From sequence record OQ722176.1: a stretch of 64,000 nt of DNA, one strand, 5' to 3'. Below are positions 2,498 through 48,904 of this stretch, piece by piece. The translations under genes were made by a program, and so were the position numbers. The notes beneath the pieces were generated by a model, which had not been told where the DNA came from, made no database searches, and saw nothing but the letters and a program-made list of their open reading frames with translations. Numbering within the stretch: the stretch's first letter is position 1; each line of letters starts with the position of its first letter.

Positions 2498-3016
2498 CTA
2501 TTTTCTGCGATTTGCTTTATTAGCTTTTCGCTTCGCTCTTCGCAGTTCTTTTCGTTTTGCTATTTTATCAGCACGTCTCACCGCGTCATAATCCGCTGCA
2601 CAAGACGCTGCGAACGCATCAGGCTTGAATACGGGCTCTTGACCCACATATCCCAAGATAGTCCCTTTAGCTTCGTTATACGCAATGTGAGAACGATGTG
2701 ACGGGTCAGGGTTGATGTCAACGTGAACTTCAAACCCGCGAGGGCCACACATTGGTTTGACTCGTAATGCAGTCTCACCAGCTTTGTATACTTCATTCAT
2801 CAAACGACTTCGAATACCGTCTTTGCAAGACATATAAGCAGGTTCTGTTTCGATAGTTTTGAATACTTGAGCGCCTTTACTACCCTCAAGGTGAATGATG
2901 ATTACAGTAGCGTAACTGATCATATCACTCTTACGCTTGCTATCACACCCGACATAGATCGTACTATTCGGGTGACTGTTATTGATAGCTGTTTCTATTG
3001 CTTCCCAATCGAACAT
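2498..3016 (-). CDS. YkuK/DUF458-like RNase H-fold protein
   Basis: IYVGCDS...YATVIIIH...RLMNEV...EVHVDIN...KPDAFAASCAAD motifs; start moved to ATG 3016 after GAGGTG SD. Confidence 0.75.
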   Translation of the reverse strand: MFDWEAIETAINNSHPNSTIYVGCDSKRKSDMISYATVIIIHLEGSKGAQVFKTIETEPAYMSCKDGIRSRLMNEVYKAGETALRVKPMCGPRGFEVHVDINPDPSHRSHIAYNEAKGTILGYVGQEPVFKPDAFAASCAADYDAVRRADKIAKRKELRRAKRKANKANRRK

Positions 3017-3032
3017 TGTCACCTCTGCAAAC

Positions 3033-3058
3033 AAAAAGGGCAGCATAATTGCCGCCCT
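3033..3058 (-). terminator. Intrinsic terminator after the vWA gene
   Basis: AGGGCGGCA/TGCTGCCCT hairpin + TTTT. Confidence 0.65.
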
Positions 3059-3065
3059 CGCTTAT

Positions 3066-4502
3066 TTAAAAGCTGTAGCGATCAACGCATACAGTTTTCA
3101 GCATGATCTTGACCGGCTCAAGTTCACCACCCAACAATGAAGTCAAGATTGATGGACTACAACCTGAAACCAACGCTGTACCCGCTTCGCCTGACTTAAC
3201 AGGAACGTTACCGATACGACCACGAATGTTCCAGAACACTAGTTGAGGCATTTCATAGCCTGCACGTGCGTACATGCCTTTGATTGCTTCGAAATTAGTA
3301 ATTTCGCCGCGACCATACCAACCACCACCGCGATTTGCTTCGTCGAATTCCATGTCGCTCATGATAAGCAACTTAGTTGGCATTTCTTCTTGTGAAAGTT
3401 TTGCCTTCTTCGCACGTTCTAGTAGAACGCTGAAACACTTGGTGATGTTAGTGCTCATGTCTTCGCCAGAGCGATTCATGTTGTCAAGACGCTCTTTCAG
3501 TGAGCTACCGCGCAACTGGTGGAAGTGCGGATCACTTGAGAACGAAATGAACTGGTCTTTGAAGATGCCTTCGTTACGTTCAGCAACGTAGATGCCTAGA
3601 GACATTGCAACTTGCTTACAAGAAACGCTTGAACGATCAGTACCTGCGTTGATCGGCGTGCTCATAGAGCCAGACACGTCTACAACAGGGATGATGCGCT
3701 CATCAGAACCTTCCATGTAGTTCGGTAGAGCTTTCCATTGCTCATTCGCTACAGATGCGTTACCGTGACTAACGCTTTTAACAACATCGTATGGGAACAA
3801 TGCAGCAGCGTTGATCTTCGCTTCACCTTTTTGAAGTGATTCGATGTAGCTTGTGTAACGTGTCGAAGCGTTACGACCGAATGCTTGTTGATAACGAGCA
3901 GACGCTACAGAAGGCAACTTACCGAAGTCGATTGCATCCCATTCTTGAGCACACATCTTTTGTTCAACGGTGTCAGACAAAAGAGCAAGAATCTTACGCC
4001 ACTGCTTCGCAGTCACACCAAGAGACTTGATTGTGCGCTTGAACACATGACCGTTTTTGCTGTTTTCACGTGGGAACCACTTCGCAGCAAGACCGTTTTT
4101 GTCATTGACAATTGCGTTTGACCACATAGTGATCGCGTCTTTTTCAAGTTTAGTACCGAATGCAACAATCAAGTCATCGAAACGACCTAATTCTGGTACT
4201 TTTGACATTACAGCACGAGCAACGTCTGGCTGTTCATTACAAAGTTTAGCGAACAAAGTACGGAAAGTACCACGTTCACCCGCGCCACCGCGAACGTCAC
4301 GAGACCATAGCAAGATGCGAGTCGCTAGTTCTGGGTTTTCTGCAAACGCACGACCGAACAGAGTTTTAGACTGATCGTTGCCACGCATAGCAGCAATACC
4401 GAAGAACAAGTTTAGACACTCGTTACCTGAAGTGCTGTGAGTAAGTGCACCGTTTGCTGTACGTGAATCGTTTGATTGCATAGCGTTCATAAATGCTGAC
4501 AT
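3066..4502 (-). CDS. DUF2828-like helical + vWA protein (Ro60/TROVE-like architecture)
   Basis: RDVRGGAGER and AAKWFPRE motifs, C-terminal vWA with MIDAS DVSGSM...T...SDMEFD; start moved to ATG 4502 after GAGGA SD. Confidence 0.75.
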   Translation of the reverse strand: MSAFMNAMQSNDSRTANGALTHSTSGNECLNLFFGIAAMRGNDQSKTLFGRAFAENPELATRILLWSRDVRGGAGERGTFRTLFAKLCNEQPDVARAVMSKVPELGRFDDLIVAFGTKLEKDAITMWSNAIVNDKNGLAAKWFPRENSKNGHVFKRTIKSLGVTAKQWRKILALLSDTVEQKMCAQEWDAIDFGKLPSVASARYQQAFGRNASTRYTSYIESLQKGEAKINAAALFPYDVVKSVSHGNASVANEQWKALPNYMEGSDERIIPVVDVSGSMSTPINAGTDRSSVSCKQVAMSLGIYVAERNEGIFKDQFISFSSDPHFHQLRGSSLKERLDNMNRSGEDMSTNITKCFSVLLERAKKAKLSQEEMPTKLLIMSDMEFDEANRGGGWYGRGEITNFEAIKGMYARAGYEMPQLVFWNIRGRIGNVPVKSGEAGTALVSGCSPSILTSLLGGELEPVKIMLKTVCVDRYSF

Positions 4503-4538
4503 TGTTGATTTCCTCATATTAAATTGCTGTATAATGTC
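4498..4538 (-). promoter_or_regulatory. Leader hairpin with UACAGCAA motif, occluding SD/AUG of the vWA gene
   Basis: GACAUU-A-UACAGCAA-UUUAAUAUGAGGAAAUCAAC-AAUGUC; the 3' stem strand contains the AUG. Confidence 0.65.
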
Positions 4539-4552
4539 GTTTTGATGTGATG

Positions 4553-4911: not shown

Positions 4912-5246
4912 GACTGAAACCCCGCTTTTGTGTTTTCTCGAATTGTGATTTTCACATACGAGTATGAGTAGTCGCGCATATCACGCGGATCGCCATTGTA
5001 ATGACCAAATTGCGAGTCGAAGTTATGAAACCCTTCTTTCTTCAGAACTTCGCGTATTAGAGTCATCATTTCATCACAGCATTCATTGCGTTGCAATTGA
5101 ACTTGAATGCTAATAGGGAAAGAAAATCCCTGAACGCCGCCAATTTTTCGTTCTATTGCTTTACGCAGTTCAACAACAAACATTTCTTCGCGAGTTGAAC
5201 GATTCTGTGCGACTTTACTAACTAATGTATCGTATAACTTGGTCAT
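4908..5246 (-). CDS. Hypothetical protein (112 aa)
   Basis: ORF track; coupled overlaps at both ends. Confidence 0.7.
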   Translation of the reverse strand: MTKLYDTLVSKVAQNRSTREEMFVVELRKAIERKIGGVQGFSFPISIQVQLQRNECCDEMMTLIREVLKKEGFHNFDSQFGHYNGDPRDMRDYSYSYVKITIRENTKAGFQS

Positions 5247-5611
5247 ACATAATCCTTAATCGAATTGTCAAAGTGGCGAATACATGAACTGTCAAGGCGC
5301 AAGCGACCATCACCATCATTATCAGGCAATGTATAGTTATCGTTAAACGGTTGACCGCATTCTTTCGCAATCTCGTATGCGTCTGCACGATTGAAATATT
5401 CACCGCAGTAGTTAATAAATCCCTGACCGCGATCACCTAGTTCATATCGGTGCTCAATAGTACCACCAAGTTCTTTGATGACCTTGAATACTGATTGCAT
5501 GTTACGACCGAAGTGACAGCTATCGGCAACAACGACTTCACGCACTTCTCCATTAGGTAGCGTTACGCGAATTGCATTTGCAGCAGAAGAGATCACATTT
5601 ACGTGCGACAT
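5243..5611 (-). CDS. Hypothetical phage protein (122 aa)
   Basis: ORF track; operon context. Confidence 0.7.
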   Translation of the reverse strand: MSHVNVISSAANAIRVTLPNGEVREVVVADSCHFGRNMQSVFKVIKELGGTIEHRYELGDRGQGFINYCGEYFNRADAYEIAKECGQPFNDNYTLPDNDGDGRLRLDSSCIRHFDNSIKDYV

Positions 5612-5961
5612 GTATCATACCTCATGAAAATCGAACCAACCTGCTTGTACTTCTGCGTTTGATTTAGCATCATACACATTTTAAATCGAGCAGATGGGTT
5701 GTTGGTGACTATAACAACAGTCTTAGGGAAATTGCTATGGTCGATTGCATGTGAGAGAATGTCATACCCCTCACGACCTACGACATCACCTAAGTCATTA
5801 TCCATGAATAGCGTAATGTCGGTTAAATTAGTGTGCTTGACGAATGTCATGCCTTCTTCAAATGTGCGCAACGTCATCTTTTCATCATCACGAACAGTTT
5901 CATTCGTGAAGTTGTTAATGTCGCGCTCATCATCAATCATAATGTACATAATAATTCTCAT
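5599..5961 (-). CDS. Stand-alone receiver-like protein, cyclic-phosphate-processing REC (cREC) type
   Basis: IDDER...MDNDLGD...GYD...TNNP pattern. Confidence 0.55.
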   Translation of the reverse strand: MRIIMYIMIDDERDINNFTNETVRDDEKMTLRTFEEGMTFVKHTNLTDITLFMDNDLGDVVGREGYDILSHAIDHSNFPKTVVIVTNNPSARFKMCMMLNQTQKYKQVGSIFMRYDTCRT

Positions 5962-6011: not shown

Positions 6012-6383
6012 ATGTTAGACGAAAAAATTATTTCTTTTGATGAATATCTAAATGAAGGGTGGTTTGAAAGGCAATGGGCGAGATATAAAGCAGGCGAAGA
6101 CACTCGCAGTATCAAGCGACTTGCTAAAATGCATACCAAGCTTCTGCACATTGAACAGAAAGCCAAGCAAAACAAGTACCGTTATGAAGTCGTGAGATAC
6201 AATTTCGAGCACATCAAAATGAATGTTCTCGACGCGAAACGCTTGATTCACAAGCTGCGTTATAAGAAAGGTATCAGCGAAGAGCTAGTTCAGGCAATGG
6301 ATAAACTAGATCTAGAGCTTGATAGACTCAACGACTTTGCCGTTGAAGGTCTGCATGATCTAATGATCAGACAGAAGTTATAA
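6012..6383 (+). CDS. Basic protein with capsid-targeting-like N-terminus (putative internal head protein)
   Basis: ISFDEYLNE then K/R-rich; ATAAATA late-promoter-like motif at ~5974; ATG 6012. Confidence 0.6.
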   Translation: MLDEKIISFDEYLNEGWFERQWARYKAGEDTRSIKRLAKMHTKLLHIEQKAKQNKYRYEVVRYNFEHIKMNVLDAKRLIHKLRYKKGISEELVQAMDKLDLELDRLNDFAVEGLHDLMIRQKL

Positions 6384-7618: not shown

Positions 7619-7643
7619 CAAAAAAACCTGCTCAAGGCAGGTT
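7619..7643 (-). terminator. Terminator at the 3' end of the tRNA/ncRNA cluster
   Basis: AACCTGC/GCAGGTT hairpin + T tract. Confidence 0.75.
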
Positions 7644-7659
7644 CTAATGTGCAATTAAC

Positions 7660-7907
7660 AGACATTCGAGAAGTGTTTTTTTCGTCTTTCCTCAAATCTC
7701 AATTGACTATCTCGATGTTTCTCACCGAGAAAATACTCATGATTCAGCATGAGACCTATTTCGTTTGACAGTACGAACACCGTCTTAATGGTCATTTCCT
7801 ACCACGAGAATGCGACAGGCTCACGTCATAACTGAGAAAGCAGCTAGTGCGCCTCATTACTATTAAAGTTTGCTTCTTTGATTAGTAATAGTTGCTGTAC
7901 AATGTCT
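7660..7907 (-). ncRNA. ~250-nt structured RNA, copy A (UACAGCAA family)
   Basis: Closed by AGACAUU/AAUGUCU; shares covarying hairpins and blocks with 10333-10544. Confidence 0.65.
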
Positions 7908-7918
7908 TATTGCGAATT

Positions 7919-8007
7919 TGGCGGAGATACTGGGAATCGAACCCAGAGAACGCTATTAACGTCCGACACCTTAGCAGGGTGCTGTCATACCTTTAGACCA
8001 TATCTCC
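7919..8007 (-). tRNA. trnS: tRNA-Ser(GCT)
   Basis: Cloverleaf, long variable arm, CCA. Confidence 0.9.
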
Positions 8008-8012
8008 AGTTA

Positions 8013-8189
8013 TTACTTACCGCGCTCTGCTTTGCTAATTTCAACAGCCGCGATTTGTGCGTTTGCTTCTTTCTCAGTATCATGTGTACCAAGTACACGA
8101 CCTTTAGATGAAAGAGCAACCCACTTGTCACCACGCTTCTCAACTTTCTCAGTCAAGTCGTGATATTCATCAAACGTTTTTAATTTCAT
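8013..8189 (-). CDS. 58-aa protein, putative internal head protein
   Basis: Manual translation MKLKTFDEYHDLTEKVEKRGDKWVALSSKGRVLGTHDTEKEANAQIAAVEISKAERGK; below ORF-track cutoff; TATAAATA upstream. Confidence 0.7.
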   Translation of the reverse strand: MKLKTFDEYHDLTEKVEKRGDKWVALSSKGRVLGTHDTEKEANAQIAAVEISKAERGK

Positions 8190-8214
8190 GTCTCATCCCT
8201 CAGTTAGTTTATAT

Positions 8215-8222
8215 TATTTATA
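8215..8222 (-). promoter_or_regulatory. T4-type late promoter
   Basis: TATAAATA. Confidence 0.7.
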
Positions 8223-8224
8223 AC

Positions 8225-8442
8225 TGAGCGACTTTTAATCGGTGGCATGCTGCTCTCATGCTCAGACACATATTTGCTCTTATTGCCAGCGTGTGCCACG
8301 CGCTTCGCAGATCCCATTTGATAATTTAACGACCCACGGGACTCTTAGCAGGTCTTACACATAGCCTTTCAGCTATATCTTCTTTTAAGACCATAGTGTC
8401 GTACGGTCTAATCACTCTCTTTCGATTCGCGTTGCTAAGTGA
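8225..8442 (-). ncRNA. Candidate structured RNA (element X)
   Basis: Non-coding, several hairpins (AGACCGUA/UAUGGUCU; AUAGC-UGAAAG-GCUAU). Confidence 0.35.
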
Positions 8443-8445
8443 ATT

Positions 8446-8522
8446 TGGTGCCCAACCCGAGATTCGAACTCGGATCATCTAGTGTTTGAAACTAGCGCCT
8501 CTGCCAATTGGACTAGTTGGGC
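8446..8522 (-). tRNA. trnL: tRNA-Leu(CAA), short variable arm
   Basis: Cloverleaf, 77 nt, CCA. Confidence 0.85.
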
Positions 8523-8528
8523 GAAATA

Positions 8529-8605
8529 TGGTACGCATGGGCGGATTCGAACCGCCATCCCTGAGAATTTAAACCTCATGCCTCTGCCTATTGGACCACA
8601 TGCGC
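8529..8605 (-). tRNA. trnL: tRNA-Leu(TAA), short variable arm
   Basis: Cloverleaf, 77 nt, CCA. Confidence 0.85.
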
Positions 8606-8609
8606 ATTA

Positions 8610-8805
8610 TTGTGTCGTTATGTCGATGTTGGCGACACTGCTAGGCTGCCGAGTTATCAACTCATTATACTAGCTACGGGCTTCTTACGCACTAATCACT
8701 ACTCGCAAGTAGCAACTTAAACATGCTCAGTTCCGAGCGATTAACCTCTTAGACCGTAGTCTTGAACCATAACCGACCCCTTTGCACATCCAACTTGTGC
8801 ATCGT
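8610..8805 (-). ncRNA. Candidate structured RNA (element Y)
   Basis: Non-coding, several hairpins, short blocks shared with element X. Confidence 0.3.
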
Positions 8806-8807
8806 CT

Positions 8808-9032
8808 TTAATACTGATCTTGCAAACCGCACTTAGTGCATGTTGCAGTAATTAATTCAAATCCGCTATTATCAGCAACCATTTCATGTTCACAATCAAG
8901 CTGCTTTCTCAATTCATGCAAGTGAGCTTTTTGCTCATGCAATTTCACAGAAGTTCTTCGAATGCTATCTTCAGTCAAGCGAATTGAAAATTTAACAGAT
9001 CTGTCTAAGTATTCTTTAACTTCTGGTTTCAT
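8808..9032 (-). CDS. Hypothetical protein with C-terminal CEH...CTKCG
   Basis: ORF track. Confidence 0.6.
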   Translation of the reverse strand: MKPEVKEYLDRSVKFSIRLTEDSIRRTSVKLHEQKAHLHELRKQLDCEHEMVADNSGFELITATCTKCGLQDQY

Positions 9033-9050
9033 GATATAGTTCTCAAAATT

Positions 9051-9124
9051 TGGAGCTCGAACAGGGAATCGAACCCTGACCTGCGGATTTGCAATCCGTC
9101 ATACTGCCATTATACGATTCGAGC
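9051..9124 (-). tRNA. trnC: tRNA-Cys(GCA)
   Basis: Cloverleaf, U73, CCA. Confidence 0.9.
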
Positions 9125-9227
9125 AAATTGTTAGTGCATTGCATGAGCTACTGGCGATCTTAATGGGTATTTCAAGCATTCAGAATTCCCATGCGCTACT
9201 ACAATGCTTTTTTCGCTAAATGCACTT

Positions 9228-9305
9228 TGGGGTGACAGACGGGGATCGAACCCGCATCTTCCGGAATCACAACCCGGAGGTATTTCCACTTCACCCACTG
9301 CCACA
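9228..9305 (-). tRNA. trnH: tRNA-His(GTG)
   Basis: Cloverleaf, C73, CCA; position -1 is U. Confidence 0.85.
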
Positions 9306-9383
9306 CCAAAGTACACTTTGGGACATATAACGTTTGTCAACCGGACTCATTTACGTGTGTCATTCGGTCGGAGCACTACTCCG

Positions 9384-9623
9384 TCATGCAGTTTTCTTTA
9401 AGTAGATACTATCAGGCGATAGTTCTCTTGTAAACATATTTTTGAAATAAATTTCGATGTCATCAGAAGTTGTTGAAGACTCAATTTCAAGAGCACGTTC
9501 TAAAATCTTACCGCGTTTGTAACCAGCCCGCCAACAATCAAACATAAGTCTGTCCATGCGTTTCAGTTTTTCAATTTGGTTTGGATTTACGTATTCGTGA
9601 GTTTCAAGTAATACAGGCGTCAT
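9384..9623 (-). CDS. Hypothetical protein (79 aa)
   Basis: ORF track. Confidence 0.6.
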   Translation of the reverse strand: MTPVLLETHEYVNPNQIEKLKRMDRLMFDCWRAGYKRGKILERALEIESSTTSDDIEIYFKNMFTRELSPDSIYLKKTA

Positions 9624-9645
9624 AATTTATTTCTCATCATAAGAA

Positions 9646-9719
9646 TGGTAGTCCCTAGTGGAATCGAGCCACTTCTTTCTCTGTGTAAAAGAGACGTACT
9701 GCCATTATACTAAGGGACC
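9646..9719 (-). tRNA. trnV: tRNA-Val(TAC)
   Basis: Cloverleaf, CCA. Confidence 0.85.
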
Positions 9720-9725
9720 AAAATT

Positions 9726-9799
9726 TGGAGCGGGTACACGGACTCGAACCGAGACGAACGACTTGGAAGGACGTCATGCTACCATTACATCATACCCGC
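9726..9799 (-). tRNA. trnG: tRNA-Gly(TCC)
   Basis: Cloverleaf, U73, CCA. Confidence 0.9.
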
Positions 9800-9803
9800 A
9801 TTG

Positions 9804-10010
9804 TCAATCTGAAGCGTCGAACAAATCACGTATTGCACGTAGATTCGTAAGCTCTACAGTAAGTGTTCTTATAAAGAACGGGTTGGTCTCTTTTGCGAGA
9901 CGATTTTCAACATCACGAATTTTGTCGCGAATGTTGCCCTTGCTTAGTGTAAAGTAGTCATGCTTCTTAACCTTTTTGAATGAATTTAAGCTTGTGTTTA
10001 AGCTTGCCAC
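9804..10010 (-). CDS. Hypothetical protein (68 aa), start uncertain
   Basis: ORF track, GTG start. Confidence 0.4.
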   Translation of the reverse strand: MASLNTSLNSFKKVKKHDYFTLSKGNIRDKIRDVENRLAKETNPFFIRTLTVELTNLRAIRDLFDASD

Positions 10011-10116
10011 GAGATTTATGTCTCTTACACAGTTTTGTACCGTGATAGCTATGATATTGATAAAAGCTAGTTAGCTTCTTATACAACGATTTCATGCATA
10101 CCCTCATGATTGAATT

Positions 10117-10192
10117 TGGTGGAGACACCGATACTCGAAATCGGATCTAATGGCTTATGAGACCATTGCTCTACCACTTGAGCTACATCTCC
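10117..10192 (-). tRNA. tRNA with CAT anticodon (Met or Ile2)
   Basis: Cloverleaf, CCA; identity not resolvable by eye. Confidence 0.85.
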
Positions 10193-10332
10193 ATATCTTG
10201 GTTTTGTATGTTTTACATGACGATAACCAGAAACGTGCATAATAATGCCACGTGATACATCCTATATCACGGCTAACTGAGTTAGCATATCGTGCCTTGC
10301 GGCTGTAGTGTCGTTTCCGACGAATTAAGTAC

Positions 10333-10544
10333 AGACAATACCGAAGTGTTTTTTCGTCTTTGACATGAATCGGAGTTGACTATCTTGTTATTCACAACAA
10401 GCAAATATCGTCTGTTTCAGCGACGCGCCTATCTGACTATTTCCAGGCAGAGAGAATCTTTCCTTTCAAGCTGCGCCGAAGCACTGCCCAGGTGAAGATC
10501 ATTACCTTTTTTAAGTAATTTTAATTTGTTGCTGTATATTGTCT
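10333..10544 (-). ncRNA. ~210-nt structured RNA, copy B (UACAGCAA family)
   Basis: Closed by AGACAAUA/UAUUGUCU; paralogue of 7660-7907. Confidence 0.65.
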
Positions 10545-10606
10545 CTCAAATCATGCTCGTGATATGCCGAAGCAAGTATCATTCGCCGCATGATAGAGCT
10601 TAAATT

Positions 10607-11151: not shown

Positions 11152-11157
11152 GATACT

Positions 11158-11270
11158 GAGTGTCGTTACTTGCGTCGTCCGGACTAGAGATACCAACTCT
11201 AAACGGGAGTCGAACCCGAAACATTTCTTTTCATAGAAGAATATTAGTAAATTGTTTGCTGAAAACACTC
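11158..11270 (-). ncRNA. Circularly permuted tRNA-like RNA with UUCAGCAA motif (Y-RNA-like)
   Basis: GAGUGU/ACACUC closing stem; motif; anticodon arm UUCUU-CUAUGAA-AAGAA; T arm CGGG-UUCGACU-CCCG; loop-closed UAGAG/CUCUA stem. Confidence 0.65.
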
Positions 11271-11279
11271 TTCGGTATT

Positions 11280-11669: not shown

Positions 11670-11680
11670 TTGAATAAAAC

Positions 11681-11738
11681 AGTAATCCTTTTTGCTTTTT
11701 CCAAATAAAAGTTTTGTATTGTTTGCTGTAAGATTACT
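11681..11738 (-). ncRNA. Minimal 58-nt UACAGCAA-family RNA
   Basis: AGUAAUCU/GGAUUACU stem, UACAGCAA, CUUUU-AUUUGGA-AAAAG hairpin. Confidence 0.55.
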
Positions 11739-11743
11739 TAAAC

Positions 11744-12368: not shown

Positions 12369-12482
12369 ATTACCTTCTCTTAAAAATTACAGCTTGCGTT
12401 CTTTGGTCTGTTTATCGCTGTCTGGGCTATACCCGCCGAGCGATCAATAGAGTAAGTTAAATTGCAGTATGCAAGCTAAAAT

Positions 12483-14599: not shown

Positions 14600-14715
14600 T
14601 GGCAGTCGGGGCTGGATTCGAACCAGCGACCACGTGCTTAACAGGCAATTGAAAGAGTGCTGGAGCGATACTTGACAGTATCATTCTTCGTGCTCTACCA
14701 CTGAGCTACCCGACT
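14600..14715 (-). ncRNA. tRNA-Asn-like RNA with ~40-nt insertion (UCCAGCAC motif)
   Basis: Intact acceptor (G73, CCA), D and T arms; inserted hairpin + motif before GC-CUGUUAA-GC loop. Confidence 0.75.
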
Positions 14716-16490: not shown

Positions 16491-16611
16491 TGGTGGAGAG
16501 TGGTGGATTTGAACCACCGACAAAAAGATTTACCTAGTTAGGGTTTGCAGCATGAATGCTTATCAGAATTCTTTAACATTCTTTTGCTCTACCAGACTGA
16601 GCTAACTCTCC
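16491..16611 (-). ncRNA. tRNA-shaped RNA with ~45-nt insertion (UGCUGCAA motif)
   Basis: Acceptor+CCA, D and T arms intact; AAAAGA/UCUUUU stem encloses GAUA-loop hairpin + motif. Confidence 0.75.
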
Positions 16612-16625
16612 GTTGTAAAAACATA

Positions 16626-16751
16626 TTGATGCGGGTGCAGGATTCGAACCTGCGTCACGATCTTATGAATGATATGCGAATTGATTGCCGTACAGATTCT
16701 TATCAGAATCAGTTTTTTTGCTACGTGTGCTAACCACTACACCAACCCGCA
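16626..16751 (-). ncRNA. tRNA-shaped RNA with insertion (UACGGCAA motif), no encoded CCA
   Basis: D and T arms intact; acceptor helix extends to 19 bp. Confidence 0.7.
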
Positions 16752-48067: not shown

Positions 48068-48904
48068 ATGAGCGCATACGACACTAACTCAGGTGGTATG
48101 TTCGCTAAATTGGAAAGTCAAAAGGGGTTTGACAAGATCTATGATGAGCATCTTGTCAACCCGTACTTCAATTGGGTGAAACATACAAATGAGCAGAATC
48201 TAACTGACATGCTTGTTGCAGAGGCAATCATCAACCGTGGTGTTGAGTGTGTGTATCTGCGTAGAGAAATGGAAAAGGTCGATCTTGTATTCGGCGAAGA
48301 TCCTTTGAGTAAATTTACTCAAAACTTCAGAATGGCTCTTTACGTTGAGTCGTTTGAGGGTTGGGATGGCGATGGAGATTGGTACAGCAAATTTGGGTTT
48401 CAAGTTAACGATGAAATGAATGTTTGTATCAACCCGAAATTATTCGCGCAACAAGGTGACGGGAAACAGCCGTTAATGGGCGATTTGATTTACTTCCCTC
48501 TTGCTAATTCTCTATTTGAGATTAGTTGGATTGAGAGAGAAGATCCGTGGTATATGAATGGCGTCTTGCCAATGCGCAAGATGAAAATGACTAAATTCGT
48601 GTACTCTGGTGAAGAAATCAATCTTGAGAAGCCAGACGCGGTTATTGATTCAATCGACGACTTATTAAACTTTGGATCAGACACTGACGAAATGATTGAT
48701 ATTGACAGAATCAATGCACTTGACGGTCGATGGGATATTGGCATCGAGCAAGGCGAGGAAATCACTCAAATCGAAGATGAAGTTGATAAATTCTACGAAG
48801 GTGAGCAAGTTGTTCCTCACGGTAGTGATATTCAACCGACTGACCCACGTCAAGCGACGATTGGCTTTAATGTAAATAACAGTAATCCATTCGACAGTTT
48901 TTAA
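48068..48904 (+). CDS. 14: Neck protein gp14
   Basis: VNPYFNW; LVAEAI..RG; GDLIYFP..NSLFEI. Confidence 0.9.
   Translation: MSAYDTNSGGMFAKLESQKGFDKIYDEHLVNPYFNWVKHTNEQNLTDMLVAEAIINRGVECVYLRREMEKVDLVFGEDPLSKFTQNFRMALYVESFEGWDGDGDWYSKFGFQVNDEMNVCINPKLFAQQGDGKQPLMGDLIYFPLANSLFEISWIEREDPWYMNGVLPMRKMKMTKFVYSGEEINLEKPDAVIDSIDDLLNFGSDTDEMIDIDRINALDGRWDIGIEQGEEITQIEDEVDKFYEGEQVVPHGSDIQPTDPRQATIGFNVNNSNPFDSF

Follow-up and report, generated by a model that had tools for sequence, protein, structure and literature searches.

Two paralogous structured RNAs in the tRNA operon of a KVP40-like Vibrio phage share an end module that recurs beside genes for a Ro60-like protein

Introduction

Ro60 and the Y RNAs form a conserved RNA-surveillance particle, and to our knowledge the RNA partners of Ro60 have been defined for only a few lineages. 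A phage Ro60 has been found to bind adjacent Y-like RNAs (PMC12135203), and location on the same strand within 4 kb of a Ro60 gene has served as the working criterion for a Y RNA (PMC4201824). The Class I RNAs of dictyostelid amoebae, in turn, start with AAG, the G of which is invariant, and end with CUGU, the C of which is paired to the 5′ G; their 6-bp end stem varies by compensatory change, and an 11-nt motif, CCUUACAGCAA, adjoins its 5′ strand (Kjellin et al., PMC7919456). They have been reported absent outside Dictyostelia (PMC7919456). Here we describe two RNAs, A and B, encoded in the tRNA operon of Vibrio phage vB_VspM_VS2 (KVP40-like, Straboviridae; sequence record OQ722176.1), of which the first 64 kb (hereafter the window) were analysed. 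The two RNAs resemble both of these systems at their ends, and the element that forms the ends recurs beside genes for a Ro60-like protein in unrelated phages.

Results

ARAGORN placed 27 tRNA genes in the window, between 7919 and 16107 and all on the minus strand, and both RNAs lie on this strand within the operon. Their positions, together with that of the terminator at the operon end, are as follows.

7658-7908, minus strand: RNA A, ~250 nt, the final gene of the tRNA operon, 11 nt past tRNA-Ser(GCT)
10331-10545, minus strand: RNA B, ~214 nt, with tRNA-Arg(TCT) on one side and tRNA-Met on the other
7623-7645, minus strand: intrinsic terminator at the end of the tRNA operon, just past RNA A (terminator scan: 9-bp stem and T run; conserved in homologues)

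A first-pass annotation of the window had set the two RNAs at 7660-7907 and 10333-10544; the placement was correct, and the ends proved to lie slightly further out, so that the flanking AAG/GAG and the CUGU tail are included. The shared motifs that it had listed were all present there on the minus strand. A and B were each found exactly once per phage, and in syntenic position, in 13 of 13 related vibriophages (six lineages), with lengths of 190-275 nt.

A covariance model (R1), built with a hand-derived structure from the 13 B copies only, recovered each of the 12 full-length A copies, with matches spanning the entire model (E 1e-16 to 1e-23); in the window it scored A at 79.4 bits (E 3.6e-22) and B at 246 bits. 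A and B are thus true paralogues, as the first-pass annotation had proposed. Its observation that the stems change sequence and keep their pairing was borne out in a 25-sequence alignment, which was fitted to R1 and is therefore biased towards the structure: pairing cells amounted to 89.7%, compared with 75.0% in shuffles, two-sided changes occurred in 32 of the 48 modelled pairs (shuffled mean 17.0; slid controls ≤12), and none of 500 shuffles reached any of five covariation measures. Identical compensatory changes were seen in plain MAFFT alignments. Single-sequence folding energies were unremarkable (z of -1.5 and -2.0); the support for the structure is comparative.

No open reading frame (ORF) in A or B was conserved across lineages, the longest on the RNA strand being clade-specific and ≤38 aa, and a protein-coding reading was rejected on this ground. 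An Rfam search returned no family for either RNA, even at E up to 10. Both results agree with the earlier judgement that the pair contains no credible ORF and belongs to no recognised family. A group I intron, brought to mind by AAGAUAGUCAA, which recalls an S element, was rejected for want of a P7 partner and of any RF00028 match at E up to 10.

In a distant blastn search, A and B were matched solely in ~50 records of KVP40-like Vibrio phages, with identity down to ~70% in nt-1, 1.081.O, the D482 group and F86. None of these records carries an RNA annotation over A or B, and a few give short hypothetical proteins there (PV785814, phage QD01; ON190024/OQ164647, PVA8; OZ19xxxx, D48x and F86). 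The annotated proteins are probably miscalls, the ORFs differing between lineages. Scans of IMG/VR with specific patterns gave KVP40 and VH7D only, and those of metagenomes and genomes gave chance matches only, so that bodies of the A/B type seem limited to these ~50 records; a loose pattern scan of IMG/VR also yielded nothing beyond chance matches. We found no literature on the UACAGCAA motif described below, nor, in a search that left outside it the KVP40 genome paper and a 2016 survey of RNA repair, any on RNAs other than tRNAs in the tRNA region of KVP40.

Both RNAs are closed by a stem, P1, of 7-9 bp (AGACAUU/AAUGUCU in A, AGACAAUAU/GUAUUGUCU in B), which is followed by the single-stranded UACAGCAAC and by a variable A/U-rich hairpin, P2. 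After P2, B has a long hairpin, P3, with a UUCG, GAAA or CUUG cap, and A has different hairpins, in which a CUUUCU loop is conserved. The GAAA-tetraloop hairpin P4 is common to A and B and precedes AUAGG; P5, the loop of which is usually CUGAA (stem CUCAUG/CAUGAG in A, CGUC/GACG in B), precedes UAUUU, and P6 has a GARAA loop (stem UCUCGGUG/CAUCGAGA in A, CUUGUUG/UAACAAG in B). The 3′ part reads AUAGUCAA, GAUU and AAAGACGAAAAAACACUUC and then enters the 3′ strand of P1. In addition to AUAGG, UAUUU and AUAGUCAA, the two RNAs have in common an AUUAC/GUAAU hairpin, AAAGACGAAAAAA(A)CACUUC and UACAGCAA, the last at 7892-7899 (A) and 10529-10536 (B). In 1.081.O, the 3′ half of the body is missing from A. 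The helices of B and the terminal elements of A were assigned as follows.

10544-10536/10341-10333, minus strand: RNA B, P1
10519-10515/10505-10501, minus strand: RNA B, P2
10499-10495/10460-10456, minus strand: RNA B, P3, with inner helices and a UUCG loop
10451-10444/10439-10432, minus strand: RNA B, P4, with a GAAA tetraloop
10425-10422/10412-10409, minus strand: RNA B, P5
10401-10395/10390-10384, minus strand: RNA B, P6
7908-7658, minus strand: RNA A end module, with AA at 7908-7907, stem strand GACAUU at 7906-7901, G at 7900, UACAGCAA at 7899-7892, AAUGUC at 7666-7661 and UGU at 7660-7658

Some further pairings were considered and left out of the model. The P5 loop could form a pseudoknot with the 3′ tail in B (GCUGAA/UUCGGU) and in the B copy of F86, F86_B (UGCGAA/UUCGCG); this was kept out because A-type tails vary without a matching change in the loop. 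UACAGCAAC could pair with the strand preceding P6 only in B of the KVP40 clade, and this pairing was rejected; a helix UAGUC/GACGA is not claimed, since a single compensatory event (in the A copies of D482 and F86) is too little evidence.

On the minus strand, B is flanked upstream (10546-10604) by a long, conserved, UUCG-capped hairpin and downstream (10193-10330) by conserved hairpins with GAAA, GCAA and other caps; these flanking hairpins are near-identical in KVP40 and nt-1. A common conserved block, reading GACCAU..AUGGUGUC..AGCCCGUGUGC..GAUUAAAU, stands before tRNA-Met on the minus strand of KVP40 (L001, ~4925-5000), D482 (L004, ~8650-8760) and F86 (L005, ~8565-8670), and the window is without it.

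When A and B were read side by side with two smaller elements of the operon (11679-11739 and 12389-12478), a single layout of the ends emerged. Each begins with two bases, AA in most cases, and a 6-bp stem whose first base is G; a single base and U(A/U)CNGCAA come next, and after an interior that may be of any length the 3′ stem strand ends in C and is followed by UGU. An A-rich GACGAA stretch precedes the 3′ stem strand in A, B and many of the linked RNAs of other phages. A scan with this signature gave four module copies in the window, on the operon strand only, as against one match to 1.09 Mb of unrelated loci, and the copies recur in related phages with compensatory stem changes. A and B are the long members of a larger RNA set that shares this one end module; the other members in the window are listed here.

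11679-11739, minus strand: short member, 59-61 nt, with AAG, GUAAUC, U, UACAGCAA ... GAUUAC, UGU (signature scan)
12389-12478, minus strand: short member, ~88 nt, with UAG, GCUUGC, A, UACUGCAA ... GCAAGC, UGU (signature scan)
11158-11272, minus strand: candidate degenerate member, ~113 nt, with AAG, AGUGUU, UUCAGCAA ... GACACUC, AGU and a T-arm-like hairpin inside

The 11679-11739 element was found at E 4.1e-5 by a second covariance model (R2), made from the long RNAs of other phages, and was matched weakly by R1; its stem covaries, being GCAAUC/GAUUGC in KVP40 and GAAUGU/GCAUUC in 1.081.O. The 12389-12478 element has a syntenic counterpart in KVP40, nt-1 and VH7D. The element at 11158-11272 gave a weak R2 match at 11153-11272 (E 0.0017) and a match of the 5′ module regular expression (see below) at 11272; it is probably a degenerate member, its membership being uncertain because the tail is CAGU and not CUGU.

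On the same strand, 3.1 kb from A and 5.8 kb from B, lies a gene that joins DUF2828 to DUF7788, with a product of 478-483 aa. The gene and its leader have the following coordinates.

3066-4502, minus strand: DUF2828 + DUF7788 gene (Pfam PF11443, 1e-28, and PF25043, 3.6e-46; PHROG 850, 'RNA-binding protein', phrog_850 4.4e-171)
4495-4540, minus strand: leader copy of the end module, with GACAUU at 4538-4533, A, UACAGCAA at 4531-4524 and AAUGUC at 4503-4498 (read from sequence)

The AUG at 4502 is the likely start, since residue 6 of the listed ORF is where the PHROG match sets in. An AlphaFold model of the protein was made from a 15-sequence alignment (predicted local distance difference test, pLDDT, 71.7). 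Its four best PDB matches were all Ro60, with ~500 aligned columns each: 9l5y_A (E 3.5e-8) and 9l5y_B (E 1.6e-7), both the Ro60 of Thermus phage phiLo, 1yvr (Xenopus Ro, E 1e-6) and 9nf8 (human Ro60, E 4e-5). The matches ranking below these were isolated vWA domains only. The protein is therefore predicted to be Ro60-like in fold, with a HEAT-repeat ring and a vWA domain. Its family is very large, at least 7,804 relatives being found at E ≤ 1e-5 among 8,000 candidates scored.

The stem of the leader module has the same sequence as that of RNA A, and the module encloses both the Shine-Dalgarno sequence GAGGA (4515-4511) and the AUG at 4502. It is kept in VH7D and F86 and altered in D482. Autogenous translational operators are classically laid out in this way, and a putative operator of this kind fits a protein that recognises the module.

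The association of module and gene was then followed in 79 IMG/VR loci of unrelated phages, which had been fetched via the protein alone. A pairing-free regular expression for the 5′ side of the module gave 101 matches on the gene strand, compared with 4 on the other strand and 4.3 in shuffles; 76 of the 101 lay ≤800 nt past the stop codon, 19 ≤2.5 kb upstream and none inside the gene. In a non-circular test of pairing, a 6-bp partner with a (C/U)G tail was present within 40-320 nt for 34 of 84 distinct modules (a denominator inflated by double register matches), compared with 2.85 when the stems were shuffled. Element lengths were bimodal, at ~55 and ~240 nt, like the short and long pairs of the window. 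At least 15 distinct stem sequences were seen, always with a G-C opening; as this set was chosen for pairing, the percentage paired is uninformative and only the covariation of P1 carries information. The arrangement was read directly in L149 and L151 (~52% identity), where the gap directly after the gene is taken up, in order, by a 60-nt module RNA, a ~250-nt module RNA and a terminator, with compensatory stems (GGAUCG/CGAUCC and GGAUAG/CUAUCC). In L148 (882-1011) and L206 (6167-6302) the module encloses a T arm and then a D arm, a permuted tRNA-like order as in YrlA. The first-pass annotation was thus incomplete rather than wrong, having missed both the shared end module and the link to the Ro60-like gene.

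In another phage (L189, 6658-8769), at least nine tRNA genes form an array after the Ro60-like gene and its three short module RNAs, so the association with a tRNA array is not peculiar to KVP40-like phages. In L197, a group I intron match (6140-6348; 51.5 bits, above the Rfam gathering score) lies downstream, ~700 nt from the Ro60-like gene and the two short RNAs that go with it.

Two neighbouring genes of the window bear on the setting of the Ro60-like gene.

2498-3046, minus strand: RNaseH_like gene (PF04308, Pfam 7.1e-17), directly downstream of the Ro60-like gene
5599-5961, minus strand: cREC_REC gene (cyclic-phosphate processing), ~1 kb from the Ro60-like gene on the tRNA-operon side

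The Ro60-like and RNaseH_like genes are also neighbours in the unrelated contig L148 (10001-11428 and 11747-12289). Together, the RNaseH_like, Ro60-like and cREC genes suggest a conserved RNA-repair neighbourhood.

Among the described systems, A and B resemble Y and YrlA-type RNAs (RF02553; PMC4201824, PMC12135203) in being encoded beside a Ro60-fold gene and on its strand. A lies within the 4 kb used to define Y RNAs and B outside it, and the neighbouring protein is Ro60-like by fold only. As in Y and YrlA RNAs, the 5′ and 3′ ends are paired, P1 covaries and adjoins a conserved single-stranded motif (making the stem a putative binding site), the remainder is variable and several paralogues occur per genome; the permuted tRNA-like body of YrlA has its like in some linked members (L148, L206). 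Unlike Y RNAs, the candidate partner belongs to the DUF2828/DUF7788 family and not to the Pfam TROVE Ro60 proteins, and the conserved 5′ motif is UACAGCAA instead of GNCGAA(N)G/GGUCCGA. A and B are also longer (190-275 nt, compared with 80-130 nt for Y/YrlA RNAs) and have a multi-hairpin body without a tRNA-like domain; no YrlA or tRNA match was obtained on them in Rfam at E up to 10.

The ends agree with Dictyostelium Class I RNA (RF01414) in having two bases, mostly AA, before an invariant G that pairs with the C of the 3′ CUGU and in their covarying 6-bp stem. A runs from AAG to CUGU, and B from GAG to CUGU in VS2 and from AAG in D482 and 1.081.O. In both groups the interior is variable and A/U-rich. 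Agreement at the 11-nt motif is partial: UACAGCAA, the core of CCUUACAGCAA, stands beside the 5′ strand, but the first three positions differ and the spacing is one base shorter (the RF01414 consensus after the stem reads CUUACAGCAA). The best phage score against RF01414, that of the 11679-11739 element (31.8 bits, E 5.6e-5), is below the gathering score of 41.5, and seven other phage loci gave no match at E up to 0.05. A and B themselves have no RF01414 match and, at 214-250 nt in the window, are about four times longer than Class I RNAs (~42-85 nt). They also come from a phage and not an amoeba, and are presumably cut from an operon, whereas Class I RNAs are transcribed singly from a DUSE promoter.

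In position, A and B recall the T4 RNAs rnaC and rnaD (species 1 and 2), stable RNAs other than tRNAs that lie at the promoter-distal end of the tRNA operon in a T4-like phage, and the order gene 1, 57A, 57B ... tRNAs ... RNA is common to both. The T4 RNAs differ in length (119-139 nt) and in having a tRNA-like T arm, and T4 is without the module. Homology was rejected, as no similarity of sequence or structure was found and R1 had no match there.

Discussion

On balance we think it probable that A and B are long Y-RNA-like partners of the Ro60-like protein and represent an undescribed phage RNA family; binding is what we infer from the above. The two RNAs would be transcribed within the tRNA operon and presumably excised along with the tRNAs. 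The end module, with its 6-bp stem, invariant G-C closing pair, UACAGCAA, GACGAA stretch and UGU overhang, would be the putative docking site on the Ro60-like ring. The body consists of five or six hairpins (with GAAA, UUCG and GARAA loops) and is not the same in A, B and the short members; by analogy with Y RNAs it may gate the protein ring or tether it to another factor, candidates being the host PNPase (as shown for phage phiLo Ro60) and the adjacent RNaseH-like, cREC and 2H-ligase proteins. At the leader module, excess protein could shut off its own translation. The presence of a 27-tRNA operon beside RNA-repair genes points to surveillance or repair of tRNA and rRNA during infection.

Several observations weigh against A and B being partners of this protein. 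R1 gave no match on the DUF2828 loci of other phages, and R2, run on the window, matched the end module only and no A/B body; at the level of sequence and structure models the bodies thus appear without detectable homology to the long RNAs beside DUF2828 genes elsewhere. Confidence in the protein model is moderate (pLDDT 71.7, template-modelling score ~0.55). The leader module is absent from 1.081.O. The published Ro60-binding GNCGAA near the 5′ end is absent, with GACGAA on the 3′ side instead. Finally, the RNAs of KVP40-like phages are 3-8 kb from the gene and inside the tRNA operon, and the module could therefore serve processing and not protein binding.

We regard it as unlikely that A and B act independently of the Ro60-like protein, whether by catalysis (a ribozyme), by sensing a ligand, or by sequestering a host factor, for instance a defence nuclease, as a sponge or decoy. 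Such a role would suit their compact multi-helix form, with conserved joining strands and a GAAA tetraloop, as well as the presence per genome of two diverged paralogues of a family not in Rfam. However, no known ribozyme or riboswitch core was matched at E up to 10, a sensor would have no downstream gene to control (a terminator follows A and a tRNA follows B), and the linkage of the module to DUF2828 genes would be left unexplained.

The module might instead be a processing or punctuation signal, cut by a host or phage RNase, with A and B as functionless spacers or stable by-products. The operon copies of the module do sit between tRNA genes, the short module RNAs of L189 precede a tRNA array, and T4 has at the equivalent operon end the stable RNAs rnaC and rnaD, which are without known role. 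In most other phages, however, a protein gene precedes the module, a terminator comes after it and no tRNA is near, and the module also occurs in an mRNA leader around a start codon; the A/B bodies, moreover, are conserved with compensatory changes in six lineages, which a spacer does not need. This makes a pure processing signal quite improbable. Least credible of all is that A and B are DNA-level features, namely small mobile inserts in a hyperplastic tRNA region: their ends are inverted repeats and the region does gain and lose segments and homing endonucleases between phages, but the repeats vary in sequence while keeping their pairing (G-U pairs included), the motif is on one strand (101 vs 4), the internal hairpins covary, synteny is strict in 13 phages and no transposase is linked.

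If A and B are partners of the Ro60-like protein, the data point to a second, very large Ro60-like branch, seemingly served by a partner RNA family of its own. This family has no Rfam entry, can be told by a simple module at its ends and includes short, tRNA-like and long multi-hairpin RNAs. KVP40-type phages would then gain a concrete ribonucleoprotein candidate beside their RNA-repair genes and 27-tRNA operon. A more speculative extension, which we put forward as doubtful, is that the module is the recognition site of an ancient Ro60 branch (DUF2828/DUF7788) and that the dictyostelid Class I RNAs are its eukaryotic Y-RNA equivalents. Phage A and B and the developmental RNAs of amoebae would in that case work through the same ribonucleoprotein. 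As to what Class I RNAs might bind, the similarity of the ends offers the first clue to come from beyond Dictyostelia.

Other features of the window

Counted with ≤1 mismatch, TACAGCAA occurs 122 times in the window, compared with 65 occurrences expected and 83 in the largest shuffle, an excess beyond what the RNA family accounts for. Module-like matches were also seen at 48376-48624 (plus strand) and 41901 (minus strand).

At ~16565-16706 on the minus strand, AAGAAUCUG-UACGGCAA precedes a T arm (GCAGGUUCGAAUCCUGC), a D arm and AAAGAAUUCUGA, in that order; the permutation is YrlA-like, and the end module is imperfect. The sole YrlA match in the window, a weak one, falls here (16557-16675; 30 bits, compared with a gathering score of 69). 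Matches to the tRNA model with insertions of 54 and 46 nt in the anticodon arm (48-56 bits) were found on the minus strand at 14603-14715 and 16494-16611, respectively; their KVP40 counterparts are annotated as pseudo-tRNAs of 113-124 nt, and the two elements may represent additional Y-like or tRNA-mimic RNAs and not defective tRNAs.

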